Assembly: GCA_964035545.1 (NCBI GenBank)
Contig: OZ037772.1
Span: forward strand, 8,425,150-8,489,149
Direction of reading: 5' to 3'
DNA length: 64,000 bases
Source: Bugula neritina
Lineage: Eukaryota; Animalia; Bryozoa
The translations under genes and the position numbers were made by a program. Below the pieces are notes generated by a model, which had not been told where the DNA came from, ran no database searches, and worked only from the letters and a program-made list of their open reading frames with translations. Positions 31,130 through 40,290 of the stretch are shown piece by piece (the first letter of the stretch is position 1; each line of letters begins with the position of its first letter).

Positions 31130-32292
31130 TATGTTCTTCTATAATTTTAGTGAGTGCAAATCAGCTGTCTGAAACTTTCTGTTAACTTTCCTTGTGAAAA
31201 AAAGAAGTAGCTATTCACGTAGAAAAATAAGCTTACACTTGGTTTTAAATTATTTTAAATTATAATTGGCAGATAAAATAGGAAGAAAACGATTTCATAT
31301 TTTCATGAACATGTGCATTACATACATATGTTATAGACAGTATGTCTGATGATTAGTTAGTTAGGGGGTTTAGATATCTGCCTTTTTAAATCCAATATGA
31401 ATATTATAATAATTGTAAGTTATGTTAATACAAGAAAAGTAGAAAATGAACTTAGACATGCTCATATAATCAATATCTATAATTGTATTAGTATATCTAA
31501 GTTGACAATTTTTCTTAGTTTTCTTATATACTATTTTCAGAAGATCTTATAATAATAAAATATTTCTTGTCTGAGCTTTTTTTAGTCAATCAAAGTTTTA
31601 TGCCATAGTACTTATAAGAATAATTTTGATGTTTTATGTTAGTAAGATTATAGACTGTTTGAATTGTAAACCAAAAGTCTTTTTCTTGGTCAATTTAAAT
31701 CGTTGTTATATTTCACAGCCAATGTGTTTGCACAGTTTTGTTTTACTGCAACATTAGTTTTTGTGAAATATAAATTAAAGCATATAATTACTCTCAAGTT
31801 GAAATATTATATTCCAATTTTACTTTATTGAAATAAATTTACAGTTGGATAATTGTTTTAAAGTCTAGTGCCCTAACAAAGTTATAGTATACTATACAAT
31901 GTAGCCGTAGAACTAAGGCATACAAGGTTGTAGCTAGATGAAATAATCATTTGAATCAGCATATCAGTTTTATCTCGATAAGTTTATTGGTATACTTTAA
32001 AACTACTGATTATATTTTTGTCATGCCAAATTAAATTTCCCTCATAAGTTTGTCTTTACACAAGCAAACAGAGCATATAGCAATATTATTTGATTGCCAA
32101 AGATGCAGTTCTAACACATGGTTCCATTAGAGCTTTATTCACATACAATAGCCTACATAGTTCTGTAAGAATTAACTAGAGGTAAATAGCCATGATCATT
32201 CCGCTGTTAGATTACCCTGATGGCGAATATCTATTCAGAACAAGTTACTTACCTTCCATTGCCTCTCAGTTATATTCAGTTCATCTGCCATG

Positions 32293-32683
32293 TGTGGTAA
32301 ATTTATGTTGTGTGTGTGTGTCCTTTGTTGCCGAGATCGGTACTTCGGTCCTCCAAAACACCGATATGCCGATTCTCGGCATATCGGAATACCGAAGTAC
32401 CGAAATGCCGGATTCGGCATTTCGGATTCCCGAAGTGCCGATATTCGGTATTTCGGGCCTCCGATCTCGGCAAACAAAAGAATGTCTTTGTCCTGCATGT
32501 ATATAAAAGCCAGCGAGTTCCAGTATAGTTTAGTCTACTACTGGAGCTCGCTGGATAAAGACCATTGATTCACTCGGACTATACTACAATAAAGCTATCT
32601 ACTTTCTACCTTATTTCTCGCCTTGTTTCTCATAACAAGCATGTAAAGCACTAGTTTCATTCACAACCCACAAAACTATCACA
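32293..32683 (+). repeat. 5' LTR (TGTGGTA...TATCACA), 391 bp
   Basis: TG...CA ends with an imperfect 7-bp inverted repeat; TATA box 32500-32508; AATAAA 32588-32593; three substitutions versus the 3' LTR by eye. Confidence 0.95.
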
Positions 32684-32684
32684 T

Positions 32685-32702
32685 TGGTGGCAGCAGTGGG
32701 AT
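32685..32702 (+). promoter_or_regulatory. primer binding site, tRNA-Leu-type
   Basis: TGGTGGCAGCAGTGGGAT begins 1 nt after the LTR and is complementary to a tRNA 3' end ATCCCAC(T/C)GCTGCCA-CCA, typical of eukaryotic tRNA-Leu. Confidence 0.85.
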
Positions 32703-32734
32703 TCTACGAATAGCTAGTTGCTGAGAGGAATAGG

Positions 32735-33635
32735 ATGGCCCCAGGGGAGTCAGCCCCTGAGGCAACAGCAGCACCAGCCCTCACTGTTGAGGCGCTGGTA
32801 ACAGCCCTCCAAGGATTGCGGGGGCAAGGACAGGCATCACCTGGTAACAGGTATCGCCTCCAGCCCCCGACTTTCGGAGGAGATGGAGACGTGGAACAGT
32901 TCATCAAGGAGTTCGAGGACGTGGCCACCACCGCTGAATGGCCAGTACGGGTGCGCGTCCTCCAACTCCAGGGCCTGTCTAACAGGCCGGGCCAGGAACT
33001 TCGCACTGGGACCCGACGAAGCCCACATCATGCGGGCTCTTAGGGCCCGGTTCGGCCTGACCACGGAAGAGGCGTCAGACCAGCTACAAGTGATGAGGAG
33101 AGACCGAAGGACACCTCTGGAAGATCACGCTAACGAGGTAGAGCGCCTGGCTCAGGCTGCTTTCGGTCACGCCACTGGCGAAGATCGGAAGCGCCTCGTT
33201 TTTAACGCGTTCTTCCGGAGCGTGAACCACCCGGACCTCCAGCGGTACTGGCTGGCCACGAAGGTCAAGAGCCTGGACGAGGCACTAGAGATGGGGAAGG
33301 CCTACTTCCAAGTAGAAGAACCACGGAGGGCGAACTACGCAGCTCGCCAGGTGGCCGGAGATACAGAAGAGGTACCCCCAACCCCACAAGTGGCAGCAGC
33401 AGCTACTCCGTCGCCCGAGCAGACGCAGCTCAACATGCTGATGGGCATGATGAAAGGCCTGCAGGCTACGGTGGCGGAGTTGCAGCGCAACCAGACGGAC
33501 AGGCGGGCTCCCCGCTCGCGGGACGACCCTGTCCGCCCCCCTCTGCCCACTTGTTGGGAGTGCGGGATGCCAGGACATGTGAGAAGGCACTGCCCTAAGG
33601 GACAGAAGTCTTTAAACACCCGAGGCTCACGGTGA
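32735..33635 (+). CDS. gag: Gag (1-nt frameshift near 32968), C-terminal CCHC knuckle
   Basis: PPTFGG...EQFIKEFE...W capsid-like N-terminus in ORF 32735; ORF 32883 carries CWECGMPGHVRRHC. Confidence 0.88.
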
Positions 33636-33655
33636 ATTCCGCCACCCGTGGGCCC
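33611..33655 (+). promoter_or_regulatory. programmed -1 ribosomal frameshift signal (T TTA AAC plus downstream hairpin)
   Basis: The heptamer at 33611-33617 is in gag phase (TCT TTA AAC); the -1 frame is open into the protease ORF at 33632. Stem gctcacggtg...cacccgtgggc starts ~8 nt downstream. Confidence 0.85.
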
Positions 33656-36600
33656 CACGCCAATCCGGTCCGGGATAGGACTCGGAAAACAACAGAAGAA
33701 ACCTCTCCAGAGTCGACCTACATCGAGTGGCACGCAAACCGGAGATCTCGGAGACCGAAAGGCCTACCCGATCCTCCTGCCCTGCCACTCGATACCCGGA
33801 TGCAGCTAGAAGAAACCGGATGGCAGGCACCTCGGAGATCTCGGAGACCGCAAGGTCTACCCGATCCTCCAGCCTGGCCACTCCGTAACCGGTTCGCGGG
33901 GTTGCCCGAGGAGGTTGTGGAGGAAGATTCAGCTTACTCGCAAGAGTACCCCAAGCTACCCTCCCGACCTCAGAAAACCCCCGTTGTCTCTAAGACGAAG
34001 AGGAGGCCCGCTGTGCGGACCCAAGTTGTGTCTCCCCCAAGGACTGACCACTCCAGGAGCACCCAGCCATATGGAAGCAGCTACTTCCTGCCCGGAAAGA
34101 TTGCGGGTAAAGCTGCCACATTCCTACTGGATACTGGGTGCACTACCAACCTGCTGAGTAGGCGTATCTTTGACACTCTTGGTGCACGAGAGCGGGCGAG
34201 CCTCGAGCCGTATGAAGGTGCGCATGGTACGTTGGCGGACGGATCATGCATTCCTTTCTACGGCGTCATTTCACTACCTGGACGCGTCCGTGATCAAGCA
34301 ATTCACGAGACGTTCATAGTCAGCCAGCTGAAAGAGGACGCCATCTTGGGAATGCACTTCCTGGAGAAACACCAGTGTCACATGGATTTCCAGAAGTCAG
34401 TGGTGATGATGGCTGGGAAGGAACTTGTCTGTGTTGACAAGTTTGGCAGGCCCTTGGTGGGCGGAGTCCAGGTAGTGCGGGACTGCACAGTTCGGGGAGG
34501 TCCCAGGCGACTCTTCGATGCAGAGTCAACTGCAAGGGGATCGCCGGCCTGGGGATGGTTGAAGGAACGCACGGAGCCATCCGACTAGCAAACAGCCTGA
34601 ATTGGCTAGATTGTCGGCAAGAGCTCCTCGTGCAGTGCATCAACCCCTTCACGGAACCTGTCCGATTATCGGCCGGAGCGCTGGTGGGGAAGTACCACTC
34701 CATCCAGGAAGCGGATGTGGGTCCGGCACTGGAGACAGTGGCTGACACCCAGGGGAACCCCCCTCACACCAGACGAGGAGCAGTCCCGGAGCACCTGGCT
34801 GACCTGTATGGCGGAGCATGCGGGAACTGTACGAGTAGTACTGAACGCCAAGTACTGGCTCAACTATTCGCGGAGTACAGTGATGTCTTCAGTCGTGGCG
34901 ATGGAGACATGGGGCTGACTAAGGTTATCTCCGACGAGATACCCCTGGCAGCCGGCACCACTCCCATCAGGCAGCCTACCCGACGTCTAGGCCTGGAGAA
35001 GGAGAAGGAGGTGAGCCGACAGGTACAGGATCTTCTGGACCGGGATCTGATTGAGCCTGCCCACGGTGCGTGGAGCTCCCCAGTGGTTCTGATCAAGAAG
35101 AAGGATGGTAGCTGGAGATTCTGTGTGGACTACCGCAGACTCAACAGCGTTACCATCCAGGACGCCTACCCTCTCCCACGGATAGATGAGTCTCTAGATG
35201 CCCTCGCGGGTAGCAAGTACTTCAGTACTTTGGATCTGCTTAGCGGGTACTGGCAAGTGCCCCTCAGTCCTGATGCCCAGGACAAAGCAGCATTCATTAC
35301 TCGCGGCGGGCTCTGGAAATGGAAAGTACTGCCATTCGGACTAACGTCCGCTCCGGCAACATTCCAACGACTCATGGAGCAAGTCCTCAGTGGGTTACAC
35401 TGGAAGACCCTCCTCATCTATCTGGACGATTTCATTGTCATCTCCCCAGACTTCTCGACTCATGTCAGTCGTCTGCGGGAGGTCTTTGACCGCCTCCGGG
35501 CTGCTGGACTAAAGCTGAAGCCCTCCAAGTGTGCACTCCTGCAGCCAGAAGTCACGTACCTGGGCCATGTGGTTGGCCGTGATGGGGTCGCTACCGATCC
35601 AGAGAAGGTACAAGCTGTGAAGGAGTGGACTGTCCCCCGTGACCTCCCTGAGTTGCGTGCCTTCCTGGGCCTAGTAGGGTACTACCGGCAGTACATACCT
35701 GGGTTCGCAGGAGTGGCTCAGCCATTAAATTGGCTGACCGCAAAGGGAGTCCGGTGGCAGTGGACACAGGAGGAGCAGCAGGCATTCAACCACCTCAAGC
35801 AACGGCTAATGGAAGCGCCAATCCTGGCGTATCCTGATCCAGCCAAGGAGTACATCCTGGACACTGACGCCAGTGACCACAGCGTGGGAGCCGTCTTGTC
35901 TCAAGTCCAGGGTGGAAGTGAGGTGGTCGTGGCTTACTACAGCAAGACTCTCGCGGCCGCCGAGAAGAACTACTGCACCACTAGGAAGGAACTCCTAGCA
36001 GTAGTCAAGGCGGTCAAGCACTTTCGGCCATATCTGTATGGGAAATCGTTCCGTCTGCGAACAGATCATGCATCACTGATATGGCTGTGTAAACGTGCAG
36101 AGCCCTCGAGCCAGGTGGCTCGTTGGCTAGAGATTCTTGCCGAGTTCTCTTACCGGATAAAGCACCGTGCAGGCCGGAAGCATGGGAACGCCGACGGCAT
36201 GAGCCGCCGGCCGGTAGAGGACTGTAAGCAATGCCTGCACATTGAACAGCGGGACGGGGGACCCGCTCGCCTTGACGTGAAAGCAGAACTAGTGGAGGGC
36301 ACCACCTACTAGTGGGAGCACGGCCATCTTCGGACCGAAACCCACCAGGACGGTGTCCAGGCGCTCCACGCCAACCCTACTCTGCACCAGAATGTCAAGG
36401 AGCTGTGCCGACTCCAGGAGACGCTACCCGGCGCGGTAGCGGACATCTTCCGGGCCAAGAAGGAGGGCCGACGGCCTAGCGAGGAACAGCAGCGGCAGGG
36501 AGACGTTGAGTTCCAACTCCTCTGTCGTCGCTGGGATGCCCTCAAGGTCAGTCCTGATGGCCTCCTGATGATAACGTTAGCAGCAGACAACCGCCAGCAG

Positions 36601-38030
36601 AAGAGGGACCGCGTCATCTGTCCACGCGCCCTCCGGCGGGAACTGATCTGGGACACCCATAAGCAGGCTCATGCTGGAGTCAGTCGGGTTATCAGGTGTC
36701 TGCGGCTGCGTTGGTATTGGCCCGGAATGACTCGGGACGTACGACTGCGGGTACGGCAATGCGAGGTCTGCCAAGCTAGCAAGCATGGCCGCCCCACGGA
36801 AACCACTGGTCGACGCCGGCTGTACGCTGGTCGACCGTGGCAAGTAGTGGCGGTAGACCTCGTCGGGCCTATGCCGTTATCCGCCAGAGGGAACACCTGG
36901 ATACTGGTGCTCACGACCACTTTACCCGGTGGGTGGATGCTCTGGCTATTCCAGACGCCACCGCCCCCACGGTGGCCCGGACCCTGGACCAACATGTGTT
37001 CTTTTACCTCGGTTTGCCCGAGCAGATACATACGGACCAGGGTGCCCAGTTCCAGTCCCAGCTCATGGGACACCTCTGCCGGATATGGGGGGTGAACCAG
37101 AGTCGGACCACCCCATATCACCCGCAAGGGAACGGAGTCGTAGAGCGGAACAACAGGATGTTGGGTGACGCGCTCCGGAGCCTGCTACTTGGTCGAGGTC
37201 AGGAAGAATGGGACGTGGTGCTGCCGCAGATCATGCGGGCTTACCGCAGCATACCACACTTCAGCACGCAGGAGACCCCAAACTTCCTGATGCTAGGCCG
37301 AGAGACGCGGGTCCCGGAACACCTGACGTACCATGTTCCTGCCCCCGAGTCACCGGTACACGAATATGTGGAGGGTCTGATGGACATCATGGGCAAAGCT
37401 CATCCGCTCGTGCAAAACTCATGCGCTGCGCACCCAGCAGTGGCAGACCCGCACAGAGGACTCGGAGGAGCCCCCGTTGTACCAAGTGGGAGACTGGGTC
37501 TGGATGGTGAGCTACCGTAGGCGACGCGGACAGTCGGCTAAGCTTCAGCCCAACTTCGTCGGCCCCTACTGCGTAGTGGAGGTGCTGCCCAACCACACGT
37601 ACCGTGTGGAGCGCTCTGGACAGATCTCTGTCCAGAGCGAGCAGCGCCTCAAACCTTACCATGCCAGCCCAGACGCGGTGGGTCAGGCTCCACCCCTCCT
37701 GGAGCCCCACCGTCAGCCCAACCGTCGAGGACGGGCCACCCAGCCCCGAGAGGTGGAGATTATGGTCCCCAGGGAGACGGACCAGGAGCAGGCCGCCTTG
37801 ATAGAGCAGCTGGAGCGGCAGCAGAGAGCGGAGCGGGAACAGGAACAGCGGCAAGCCCTTGGATCACAACCCTTCCCGGGGGAGGACACCCCCACCCCCG
37901 TACGGGGTGAAGACGGGGACCCCCCTACTAGGGCAGCCCAGGAGCCACCAACACCACCAGTGCCTGTTCCACTTGAGAGGAGCCAGCGGCCAAGAAGACC
38001 TCCCAGGTACCTGGCAGACTATGCTGTAGG
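33611..38030 (+). pseudogene. pol: Pol (aspartic protease, RT, RNase H, integrase), disrupted
   Basis: LLDTGC protease; WRFCVDYR, LPFGL and YLDD RT; DTDAS/ELLAV/TDH/NADGMS RNase H; HHCC, VDLVGP/HTDQG/VERNN and GPY integrase, ending RSQRPRRPPRYLADY. Lesions: frameshifts near 34493, 36916 and 37400-37430, and a TAG at 36310. Confidence 0.93.
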
Positions 38031-39612
38031 GCACCTGGAGTGGCCCCCTCCTGAGGACGACCCCCCCCACACTGACTACCACCCCATCTTGGTTGGAAAT
38101 TCCCTCCATCATCCCGGAGGATTCCACCAAGAAGAAGAAATGGCTGACCGAATTTCGGAAGACACTCGATCACGCGAGTTGTCTTTCCGAAATGCGGGGG
38201 AAATTCCCACGAGCCACGCAACTCGGGCTTCAGCAGGTAAAACTTCTGAAGCACGAGGTTCGGCCATTTCTCATTCTGATTTCACACAGCTCGCACGGCA
38301 GTTACAGCTCAAGCTAAATTCTGATTCTAATACTCATTTTGATTTTAACACTGTTCTCCAGACGCTATCAGCAGCTATGGGAATTACTTTACCAGACAGG
38401 CAATCAGGTATTTCTTCTAGATTAGATCCTCCAGTTGCGGAGTCTAGTCAAACTAAAGTAGACTGGTCTTTACTAGACTTACTTGGTTCTGATTTCTTAG
38501 AACCGGAGGCCGAGATGGATCTTGGAGATGACTCTGCCATTGATACTTTGTTAAATCACGACGTAGGCTCAGTCAATTTCTGCGATACACCTCGGCCCTC
38601 GGTTTTTAATTTAACTCCATACACACCTGTGCCGAATTTCGGCGATAGTGAGACCGGCTTATCACAGCCTCTACTATCTATTCTAGAGGAGCGTATGGAC
38701 ATTGAGGAGGCCAGTCGGTCCGACTCCCCTCTCCCACCGGCCCTTGCTTCGGCTTCTACCAGCCAGCAGGCCGCCACCTCCTCCACAGAGGTGTGTTCCG
38801 CCATCGCTAGTGGCCCTGACCCCAAACCGGTCGAGCTCCAGCTCACGGCCGGGGAGGAGCAGGGCATCCTACACGGCGACCACCTGCCAACAGAAGAAGA
38901 TAACTCCCCAATACTGGCCCTGCCTCGGGCCCTGGTCGCCCGCCAGTATTGGGTGACTGGACCCACCAATCTTAAGATTGGTGAAGCTTGCGGTGAGCCG
39001 GGCAACCGCATCTGCCATGAGTGTAAGAGGAAGTTCTCCTCTGCACGGCGGTTGCGTGTACACACCCCACAGCACTACATCAATGTGTTTTGCCCGTGTG
39101 GGGAGTTCTCCTACCAGAGAGACTATGTGTTGAGACATCAACGCATAGCTCACTGCCACACGGGCTACACGTTTGCTGTAGACCAGGCCTCCTTTCCCGA
39201 GTTTCGGGACCTGGTGCTGCCACACGTGGCGGATCCCCATAAATGGGCTGCTCTCGCCCTGGGATTCCCCGCATGTAGGCCTGTTCGGGAAGAAGAAGGG
39301 GAGCCCGCCGCGACACCCCAACCGGCAGCCACCCAGCCACTTCGGGTCATGCTGGCACGGGTCGGACCAGGCGCCAGGACCGATTCATCGGACCTGGGCC
39401 CCCGGCCCTCGGCGGCGGGCGAGAAGCAGACGCACCGCCAGCGACGTCCTACCCATGGTACCACCGACCGCCCCAGACACCAGACGTCGGCCCAGTTGGC
39501 AGAGGAGGTACAGCATCTCCGCCGGCAGCTCCGCAGGTATGAGGAGGAGCTGGGGCAACTCAGGAGACGTGTTAGCCGCCTGGAGCGGGGCCGATCTGGA
39601 GACTGCCGCTGA
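37477..39612 (+). CDS. integrase C-terminus continuing in frame into a ~530-aa accessory region: acidic segment, two C2H2-type fingers, coiled coil
   Basis: 711-aa ORF. CHECKRKFSSARRLRVHTPQH (Cx2Cx12Hx3H) and CPCGEFSYQRDYVLRHQRIAH (Cx1Cx12Hx4H) at 39013-39153; heptad LAEEVQHLRRQLRRYEEELGQLRRRVSRLE at ~39495-39585; in-frame aaaATGG at 38140. Confidence 0.8.
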   Translation: MYQVGDWVWMVSYRRRRGQSAKLQPNFVGPYCVVEVLPNHTYRVERSGQISVQSEQRLKPYHASPDAVGQAPPLLEPHRQPNRRGRATQPREVEIMVPRETDQEQAALIEQLERQQRAEREQEQRQALGSQPFPGEDTPTPVRGEDGDPPTRAAQEPPTPPVPVPLERSQRPRRPPRYLADYAVGHLEWPPPEDDPPHTDYHPILVGNSLHHPGGFHQEEEMADRISEDTRSRELSFRNAGEIPTSHATRASAGKTSEARGSAISHSDFTQLARQLQLKLNSDSNTHFDFNTVLQTLSAAMGITLPDRQSGISSRLDPPVAESSQTKVDWSLLDLLGSDFLEPEAEMDLGDDSAIDTLLNHDVGSVNFCDTPRPSVFNLTPYTPVPNFGDSETGLSQPLLSILEERMDIEEASRSDSPLPPALASASTSQQAATSSTEVCSAIASGPDPKPVELQLTAGEEQGILHGDHLPTEEDNSPILALPRALVARQYWVTGPTNLKIGEACGEPGNRICHECKRKFSSARRLRVHTPQHYINVFCPCGEFSYQRDYVLRHQRIAHCHTGYTFAVDQASFPEFRDLVLPHVADPHKWAALALGFPACRPVREEEGEPAATPQPAATQPLRVMLARVGPGARTDSSDLGPRPSAAGEKQTHRQRRPTHGTTDRPRHQTSAQLAEEVQHLRRQLRRYEEELGQLRRRVSRLERGRSGDCR

Positions 39613-39900
39613 GACTATTTGTTTAGTATTTTCTTTCCTATTCTTATTTCCTTGTTTTTTTATATATATATATATGTGTGTAAGTTCTTCATGTAATGTA
39701 TGTACCTATTCATGCTCTGTTTTCTTGTGTGTGCATAATTTTCCCTGTTTTTTTTGTATTATTAATGTCACTACATGTTTGCCGTATTTGTTTTTGTGTG
39801 TTACTTATCAACTGTGTGTTTTATTGTCGTGTCTTTTCCTGTTGCGTGTTTGTGTTGTGTACGCCTCTTTATCGGAAAGCATGCTTTCCGATGGGGGATG

Positions 39901-40290
39901 TGTGGTAAATTTATGTTGTGTGTGTGTGTCCTTTGTTGCCGAGATCGGTACTTCGGTCCTCCGAAACACCGATATGCCGATTCTCGGCATATCGGAATAC
40001 CGAAGTACCGAAATGCCGGATTCGGCATTTCGGATTCCCGAAGTGCCGATATTCGGTATTTCGGGCCTCCGATCTCGGCAAACAAAGGAATGTCCTTGTC
40101 CTGCATGTATATAAAAGCCAGCGAGTTCCAGTATAGTTTAGTCTACTACTGGAGCTCGCTGGATAAAGACCATTGATTCACTCGGACTATACTACAATAA
40201 AGCTATCTACTTTCTACCTTATTTCTCGCCTTGTTTCTCATAACAAGCATGTAAAGCACTAGTTTCATTCACAACCCACAAAACTATCAC
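39901..40290 (+). repeat. 3' LTR (terminal A missing), preceded by a short purine tract GGGGGA (39893-39898)
   Basis: Direct repeat of 32293-32682. Confidence 0.95.

Follow-up and report, generated by a model that had tools for sequence, protein, structure and literature searches.

Arrays of inverted CCGA/TCGG tetramers upstream of the TATA box in the LTRs of Ty3/gypsy retrotransposons of the bryozoan Bugula neritina

A Ty3/gypsy element in the Bugula neritina genome

The window analyzed here, a stretch of 64,000 nucleotides from contig OZ037772.1 of the bryozoan Bugula neritina, contains a GC-rich insert (positions 32293-40290) with a GC content of 53-62% compared to ~31% in the surrounding DNA. 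The insert is delimited by two copies of a 391-bp direct repeat that differ in 3 of 391 positions. The boundaries of these long terminal repeats (LTRs) were set from 30 copies, and the element has the following layout (window coordinates).

32293..32683 (start at 32291 or 32293), forward strand: 5' LTR (TGTGG...ATCACA), direct repeat of 39901-40290
32500..32509, forward strand: putative TATA box TATATAAAAG, recognized by reading the sequence
32510..32554, forward strand: 16-bp inverted repeat around the expected transcription start, 94% complementary, present in families A-D (see below)
32588..32593, forward strand: putative poly(A) signal AATAAA in R
32685..32704, forward strand: primer-binding site TGGTGGCAGCAGTGGGATTC, present after every 5' LTR copy
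32735..33635, forward strand: gag, frame-shifted in the window copy
33632..37520, forward strand: pol (protease, RT, RNase H, integrase), in several frames in the window copy
38914..39609, forward strand: C-terminal tail domain of Pol, with two C2H2-like fingers, a disordered linker and a 40-residue helix
39901..40290, forward strand: 3' LTR, repeat of the 5' LTR

In uninterrupted relatives, the gag product consists of 306 amino acids and contains one CCHC knuckle. The domains of pol are arranged in the order PR-RT-RNaseH-IN, with matches to the Pfam families RT_RNaseH_2, Integrase_H2C2 and SH3_Tf2-1. The LTR pair, primer-binding site, polypurine tract, CCHC-containing gag and PR-RT-RH-IN pol are all present and, given the domain order and the Pfam matches, the sequence identifies this element as a Ty3/gypsy LTR retrotransposon of Bugula neritina rather than a member of Ty1/copia. 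The genome contains at least 40 LTR copies that are 96-100% identical to one another, which indicates that the family is young. The window copy is defective, with gag and pol split across frames (32735-39612) despite the few differences between its LTRs.

Insertion sites are marked by AT-rich target duplications of 4 bp, mostly ATAN, and the window copy is without a clean one (CATG versus TGAC). Two full-length copies near 11.47 and 11.53 Mb of another contig (L010/L026 and L018/L027, G000:C6) have identical flanks on both sides and are one insertion that was copied within a segmental duplication. The arms of the inverted repeat at 32510-32554 both contain an insertion in family D, such that the pairing is preserved; because the 5' arm of this repeat lies in U3, the 3' end is the only part of the transcript where the hairpin could arise.

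The tetramer array in U3

The U3 region of both LTRs contains a dense array of short palindromes with the following components.

32324..32478, forward strand: U3 palindrome array of the 5' LTR, 19 tetramers on an 8-bp lattice, with a long-range outer stem
32328-32340 / 32461-32473, forward strand: outer stem, 13 of 13 positions paired and 4 more pairs beyond a 1-nt bulge; kept in families A, B and C
32338-32349 / 32391-32402, forward strand: alternative pair that contains the long-range stem S2 (32338-32348 / 32392-32402)
32361-32372 / 32376-32387, forward strand: hairpin 1, 12 perfect pairs, loop TTC
32400-32410 / 32415-32425, forward strand: hairpin 2, which together with hairpin 3 forms one long hairpin in the minimum free energy (MFE) fold
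32429-32441 / 32445-32457, forward strand: hairpin 3, two G·T pairs among the arms
39932..40086, forward strand: array copy of the 3' LTR, within the 3' untranslated region of the transcript, immediately before R

An initial annotation of this sequence had described the array as a cloverleaf that is built from about eight copies of a 12-bp motif in alternating orientation, with S2 as an alternative pair. All the stems that it listed exist at the stated coordinates and, allowing at most one mismatch, the 5' LTR contains 8 occurrences of the 12-mer CCGAWRTRCCGA and the 3' LTR contains 9 (17 in the window against 0.27 expected; the maximum in 100 shuffles was 2). The 12-mer, however, corresponds to two lattice points, and the elementary unit is the tetramer CCGA or TCGG (CCGG once), of which there are 19 copies in 140 bp, with start-to-start distances of 6, 7 or 8 bp and the orientation pattern >< < > > > < < > > > < < > > < < ><. 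The density of CCGA/TCGG reaches 106 per kb in the array, compared to 10.4 per kb in the GC-rich interior of the element and 0.79 per kb in the host DNA of the window.

The distance to TATATAAAAG is 21 nt from the end of the outer stem and 29 nt from the end of the last tetramer. The same array was annotated, and is indeed found, in the 3' LTR (39929-40088); within hairpins 1-3 and the intervening spacers, the only difference between the two copies is G at 39963 for A at 32355 (CCGA to CCAA). Given the TATA box at 32500 and the AATAAA signal at 32588, only the 3' LTR array would be included in the transcript.

The array is predicted to fold into very stable structures. For positions 32321-32480, the MFE is -98.0 kcal/mol with RNA parameters (z-score of -13.0) and -60.7 kcal/mol with DNA parameters (z-score of -12.6), and none of the 200 shuffled sequences folded as well in either case; the MFE for the array of the 3' LTR is -103 kcal/mol. 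The cloverleaf is a legitimate fold with an energy of -86.1 kcal/mol, but not the best one: in the MFE structure, the supposedly alternative stem S2 encloses hairpin 1, and hairpins 2 and 3 pair with each other. The repetition of the motif allows several folds with a similar extent of pairing. A scan of the 3' LTR against Rfam yielded at best 24-25 bits, for generic miRNA-precursor models with gathering thresholds of 86-95.

Related families and the spread of the array

We searched the genome with the Pol tail, read representatives of each family and named the families A to I. The identity of the tail grades across the families (94-100, 75-78, 68, 59, 48, 45 and 36-38%), and their U3 regions can be described as follows.

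Families A, B and C: array just before the TATA box, one common lattice type, longer in C
Family D: six strictly alternating CCGA-N3-TCGG units, spacing 7/9
Family E: one long inverted repeat, 11 tetramers including CCGAGATCGG
Family F: local palindromes of CGA/TCG words
Families G, H and I: tail present, no array of this kind

The start-to-start distances are 6-8 bp in A, B and C. Although the array length varies from 90 to 160 bp among the families, a spacing of 28-30 nt separates the last tetramer from the TATA box in A, B, C and E (46 nt in D). The four families with the 28-30-nt spacing are hard to align with one another; in A to C, the conserved distance to the TATA box partly reflects shared ancestry because that spacer is alignable. 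A long-range stem closes the whole array in families A to E, with D and E being nearly single hairpins of 45-55 bp, and in family E, the sequence outside of the tetramers is complementary as well. The fold z-scores are -13.5 for A, -11.7 for B, -14.9 for C, -8.8 for D, -13.9 for E and -3.6 for F. The CpG observed/expected ratio of the LTRs in families A-E is 1.0-1.4, in a genome of ~31% GC. The 27-bp arrangement CCGA-N4-CCGA-N2-3-TCGG-N4-TCGG occurs 276 times in the genome, whereas the reversed control does not occur at all. Considering the 11-tetramer inverted repeat of family E and the CGA/TCG words and weak fold of family F, the property that is common to the clade appears to be the presence of CpG palindromes before the TATA box rather than one fixed site.

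The search of public data with the tail profile also identified two JGI contigs that belong to the Bugula families F and H. In the family F contig L049 (4560-5320), which comes from a public metagenome, the 3' LTR is directly followed by a primer-binding site and a new gag, that is, these are tandem elements with one common LTR. Directly 3' of the 3' LTR of a family G element (L043:9360-9700, oriented), there is a tandem array with a 20-bp unit. In three tail-bearing contigs of another organism (GC ~48%), the CCGA lattice is absent, and different palindromes are found in U3. The first 30 nt of the LTR in these contigs form a small hairpin (L050:2555-2585, L051:2510-2540 and L052:2545-2575), the stem of which varies by paired change, GGCGG/CCGCC versus GCCGG/CCGGC, and L050 contains further U3 palindromes, for example, CCCCGGTATAGACCGGGG.

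Conservation of the tetramers

In the gap-free alignment of the arrays from families A and B, 4 of the 76 tetramer columns are changed compared to 23 of the 64 spacer columns (p=7e-6), and the difference is even sharper between A and C (3 of 76 and 28 of 64, respectively; p=7e-9). The tetramers are better conserved than the spacers although it is the tetramers that contain the CpGs. A similar trend is seen within family A: among the variants that passed through transposition, that is, those found in more than one element or in both LTRs of the same element, the ratio of spacer to tetramer changes is 9:1, whereas among those private to a single LTR it is 2:3, with all three tetramer changes being G>A at a CpG (Fisher's p=0.08 for the split between transposed and private variants). 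The spacer bias of the variants in transposed lineages indicates that, to judge from these substitution patterns, the tetramer appears to be subject to purifying selection in the lineages that keep moving, a feature that a purely structural model does not predict. In principle, the conservation of the tetramer could reflect recognition of an RNA or single-stranded DNA hairpin instead of duplex DNA.

The greater conservation of the tetramers compared to the spacers, the fixed 8-bp lattice and the maintained distance to the TATA box all support the array of inverted binding sites that was suggested in the initial annotation. We favor, at about an even chance, the interpretation that the array is a promoter-proximal lattice of binding sites, probably for a dimeric factor, and that the inverted layout also causes the 3' copy to fold, with the pairing being mildly maintained. 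Among the sites of known factors, those of HSF, STAT, E2F, NFI, ETS, DREF/BEAF, THAP and Grainyhead are not known to match the spacing or the core of such a lattice.

A different way to read the conserved CpGs is that the array is a target of host control, namely a CpG-dense landing pad for the methylation machinery or for host zinc-finger repressors, such as those encoded in nearby ZNF clusters. The 8-bp spacing of the CpGs and the CpG ratios of the LTRs in this AT-rich genome are compatible with such a role. A target of repression, however, should be lost rather than conserved in lineages that are still transposing, and we assign only a slim chance to this possibility.

Conservation of the base pairing

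To characterize the covariation, nine distinct arrays (variants of family A, the element L035, and families B and C), representing 3-4 families, were aligned. Under the cloverleaf model, 94.2% of the alignment cells are paired and 4 pairs are changed on both sides, a result that was reached in 5 of 500 shuffles; under the MFE model, the respective values are 93.8% and 7 pairs, which was reached in none of the 500 shuffles. With the motif being repeated, the two models fit the nine-sequence alignment equally. The clearest example of a paired change is the long-range pair 32341/32399 (alignment columns 44-102), which is T-A in most of the family A copies but C-G in one family A element, in L035 and in family B, the overall count being CG in five sequences and UA in four. 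Among the spacer pairs that are changed relative to family A, 6 of 9 in family B and 10 of 11 in family C are still paired, with half of these pairs being G·U.

In families B, C, D and E, the better-folding strand is the sense strand, whereas in families A (L031) and F the antisense strand folds as well or better. Using a fold that is blind to G·U pairs, we counted isolated transition mismatches within stems and found 11-12 G·T mismatches on the sense strand compared to 2-3 A·C mismatches. The background of transitions in the 2.9-kb interior of family A leans in the other direction (80 A>G and C>T changes versus 99 G>A and T>C changes), against which the G·T excess has a p of ~0.004-0.011, a value that is based on ~14 events and on predicted pairings. 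This excess suggests that the pairing takes place in the sense strand, as RNA or plus-strand DNA, and the wobble bias could result either from selection or from RNA editing of the folded transcript.

The structured RNA that was envisaged in the initial annotation, for packaging, export or as a dsRNA trigger, is partly supported, as far as the structure itself is concerned, by the maintenance of pairing via compensatory changes and by the G·T bias.

The same patterns bear on the alternative that it is the folded nucleic acid itself that is selected. The 3' U3 hairpin of the genomic RNA or of the plus-strand strong-stop DNA would then have a task of its own, which might be to aid the export, stability or packaging of the RNA, to aid strand transfer or to serve as a small-RNA precursor, with the tetramers contacting an RNA-binding or ssDNA-binding protein. 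Such a role would account for the global inverted symmetry, beyond the local dyads, that is kept in five families, for the compensatory double changes on a long-range stem with arms 50 nt apart, for the superior folding of the sense strand in four families, and for the prevalence of sense-strand G·T over A·C mismatches. Furthermore, small RNAs from hairpins have been proposed for the palindromes of Sirevirus LTRs (PMC4728375). A purely structural role, however, does not account for the drift of the spacers around a tetramer that is kept at each point of the lattice, and leaves the constant place of the array beside the TATA box unexplained. Moreover, the structure is not unique given the equal fit of the cloverleaf and the MFE fold, the antisense strand folds as well or better in families A (L031) and F, no Rfam family is matched (25 bits at best against thresholds of 86-95), and template switching within a hairpin can also yield paired changes without selection. 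Altogether, we consider it unlikely that the fold is the primary object of selection.

Modes of change of the array

The arms of hairpin 1 are identical in different subfamilies while the loop, read on the sense strand, varies: TTC in family A, TTT in the 89% subfamily, AAA in the 84% subfamily, and GAA in L035 and its kin. These four loops comprise two pairs of reverse complements, indicating that the loop is flipped. In L035, 22 nt were lost between two TCGG repeats, and the B-type subfamilies differ by a block of ~30 bp. Template switching within quasi-palindromes is a known mutational mechanism of the Ripley type, and the loop flips and unit indels fit template switching within the hairpins. 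This mechanism would account for the loop flips, the paired changes and the unit indels; it describes a mode of change rather than a function, however, and does not explain the conservation of the tetramers.

Taken to its limit, this line of reasoning leads to the proposal that the palindromes have no function at all but grow and become homogenized by template switching during reverse transcription or replication, as a tolerated by-product. The flipped loops on identical arms in four subfamilies, the unit-sized indels that separate subfamilies and the different array lengths among the families are what one would expect in this case. Yet homogenization should equalize the spacers along with the tetramers, whereas the spacers differ between units and drift between families and the tetramers do not. 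Furthermore, the transposed variants avoid the tetramers, and the position and the kind of the array are kept across six families with tails that are 48-78% identical. In view of these observations, a complete lack of function seems very unlikely to us.

The zinc finger-like tail of Pol

In uninterrupted copies, the Pol frame is ~1,990-2,000 amino acids long and ends with the tail, which is fused to Pol in families A-F. The AlphaFold model of the tail (mean pLDDT of 84.6) consists of a compact domain of ~125 residues with two beta-beta-alpha fingers, followed by a disordered linker and a single helix of 40 residues that, in this model, could mediate dimerization. The tail has no Pfam family of its own, with at most a weak match to zf-C2H2, and its profile matches SALL and consensus C2H2 zinc fingers. 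A Foldseek search produced weak matches (E above 1), the top ones being mostly tandem DNA-binding fingers, and with VIA-align, only the long helix was matched. Comparison of the profile with public proteins yielded 327 representatives, including an "uncharacterized protein" of the bryozoan Watersipora subatra.

We also considered the possibility that the tail steers integration to CCGA-rich DNA and rejected it: the density of CCGA/TCGG in 32 flanks (6.4 kb) is 0.78 per kb, equal to the background.

The initial annotation proposed a dimeric finger protein, such as the one encoded by the element itself, as the reader of the array. Under this scenario, the array would be the operator for the two-finger/coiled-coil tail, forming a circuit of factor and response element, and the lattice would be read by the tail in one of two forms, the duplex DNA of the 5' LTR or the hairpin that forms in plus-strand DNA or at the 3' end of genomic RNA. 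The confidently predicted compact domain with its tandem C2H2-like fingers and potentially dimerizing helix, the similarity of the tail to SALL and consensus fingers, with the weak structural matches being mostly to tandem DNA-binding fingers, the dyad sites with a conserved half-site, and the co-occurrence of tail and array in families A-F are all compatible with such a circuit.

The variation of the two components, however, does not follow the expected course. The putative contact residues of the fingers (positions -1, 2, 3 and 6; S/T-R-R-V/I and Q/N/C-D-Y/T-R/K) are nearly invariant from family A to family I, whereas the array motif changes in E and F and is absent in G, H and I, so that no co-variation of the fingers with the motif was found in this set of families. 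Conversely, the elements of ~6.6 kb that carry array-bearing, B-like LTRs yielded no match to the tail in two genome searches, although the protein could be supplied in trans. These elements, which include G000:C1:1909869-1916805 and about ten similar LTR pairs (family A elements span 7.6 kb), may be tail-less or non-autonomous relatives. In addition, there is no enrichment of CCGA at insertion sites. Because the array occurs without the tail and the tail occurs without the array, the proposed pairing of the two is left unsupported, and we deem it quite unlikely that the tail reads the lattice. Should this nevertheless prove to be the case, such a private circuit of factor and site would be a transcription switch made by the element itself, or else a Pol that recognizes its own RNA, and the tail-less, array-bearing elements would be parasites of the circuit.

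A proposed role of the array

From the observations described above, we infer binding of a protein, activation of the promoter and whatever role the RNA fold might have. Under the interpretation that we prefer, the array would be a promoter-proximal cis-regulatory module of a young Ty3/gypsy lineage in Bugula neritina, in which CCGA/TCGG half-sites are placed 8 bp apart in convergent, divergent and tandem pairs. In the duplex DNA of the 5' LTR, this arrangement would present many overlapping dyads, CCGA-N2-3-TCGG and CCGA-N4-CCGA along with its inverse, that could be read, just upstream of the TATA box, by a sequence-specific, probably dimeric factor. A host protein is a likelier candidate for this putative factor than the tail encoded by the element itself.

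Owing to the alternating orientation of the sites, the array of the 3' LTR is predicted to form a branched hairpin of very high stability, both in genomic RNA and in plus-strand DNA. This pairing seems to be tolerated or mildly maintained, and would in turn drive the evolution of the array via loop flips, gain and loss of units, and paired changes.

Comparison with known systems

Several retroviruses encode transactivators that act through response elements in U3, in particular, the Tas protein of foamy viruses with its target sites and the Tax protein of HTLV with its 21-bp repeats. The Bugula elements resemble these viruses in having repeats in U3, upstream of the TATA box, and in encoding an extra protein of a nucleic acid-binding type. 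However, unlike Tas and Tax, the tail is a merely putative transcription factor, and in families A-F it is fused to Pol. The contact residues of a transactivator would be expected to track the response element, and the two would be expected to be always present together; in the families compared here, the tail does not co-vary with the array, and each occurs alone.

Structured RNA elements in the 3' portion of the genome are represented by the constitutive transport element of simian type D retroviruses and by the bipartite primer site of yeast Ty3, which employs the 3' U3. Like these, the Bugula array would form a long stem-loop with internal symmetry within the 3' untranslated region of the genomic RNA, and this would be a case with a precedent for the involvement of 3' U3 RNA in replication. 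In contrast to both, the array adjoins the TATA box and is built from a repeated tetramer, and no similarity to them was detected at the level of sequence or Rfam models.

The closest analogy is with the Sireviruses, a group of plant Ty1/copia elements, the LTRs of which contain high-copy palindromic motifs ("RM boxes") with a CGG-CCG core that together constitute a CpG island, with a conserved TATA box ~37 bp beyond its end (Bousios et al. 2010, PMC2829016). The palindrome region of the Sireviruses folds into hairpins, is an indel hot spot and a target of siRNAs, and retains the palindromic organization but not the sequence (Bousios et al. 2016, PMC4728375). The Bugula array, likewise, consists of a high-copy, short, dyad-symmetric motif with a CG-containing core in U3, comprises the CpG island of the LTR, stops a few tens of base pairs upstream of a conserved TATA box, has a predicted hairpin fold (z-scores of -9 to -15 in families A-E), and is rich in indels, with the palindromic organization kept across families as the sequence drifts.

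There are also clear differences. The Bugula arrays are found in animal, bryozoan Ty3/gypsy elements; their core is CCGA/TCGG rather than CGG-CCG; the units follow a strict 8-bp lattice within an array that, as a whole, forms a single global inverted repeat; and the LTRs are ~390 bp long compared to ~1.3 kb in Sireviruses. Furthermore, the maize Sirevirus case is defined by siRNA targeting, whereas the likeness of the Bugula arrays is one of sequence features. Given the different superfamily, as indicated by the Pfam matches and the domain order, and the bryozoan host, the Bugula arrays are, by analogy of design, a counterpart of the Sirevirus palindromes and not a member of that group.

The arrays mark many young, nearly identical copies, which could be useful for genome annotation, although this practical value is modest. 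The Bugula families also constitute a natural series, in which the arrays vary in length, motif and loop orientation and the elements do or do not encode the zinc-finger tail, that could help to separate DNA-level from RNA-level roles of such palindromes. Clusters of CpG palindromes next to the TATA box have been described as a hallmark of plant Sireviruses; the same design in unrelated Ty3/gypsy elements of a marine invertebrate suggests that LTR promoters have arrived at it repeatedly and that it is not a peculiarity of plants.
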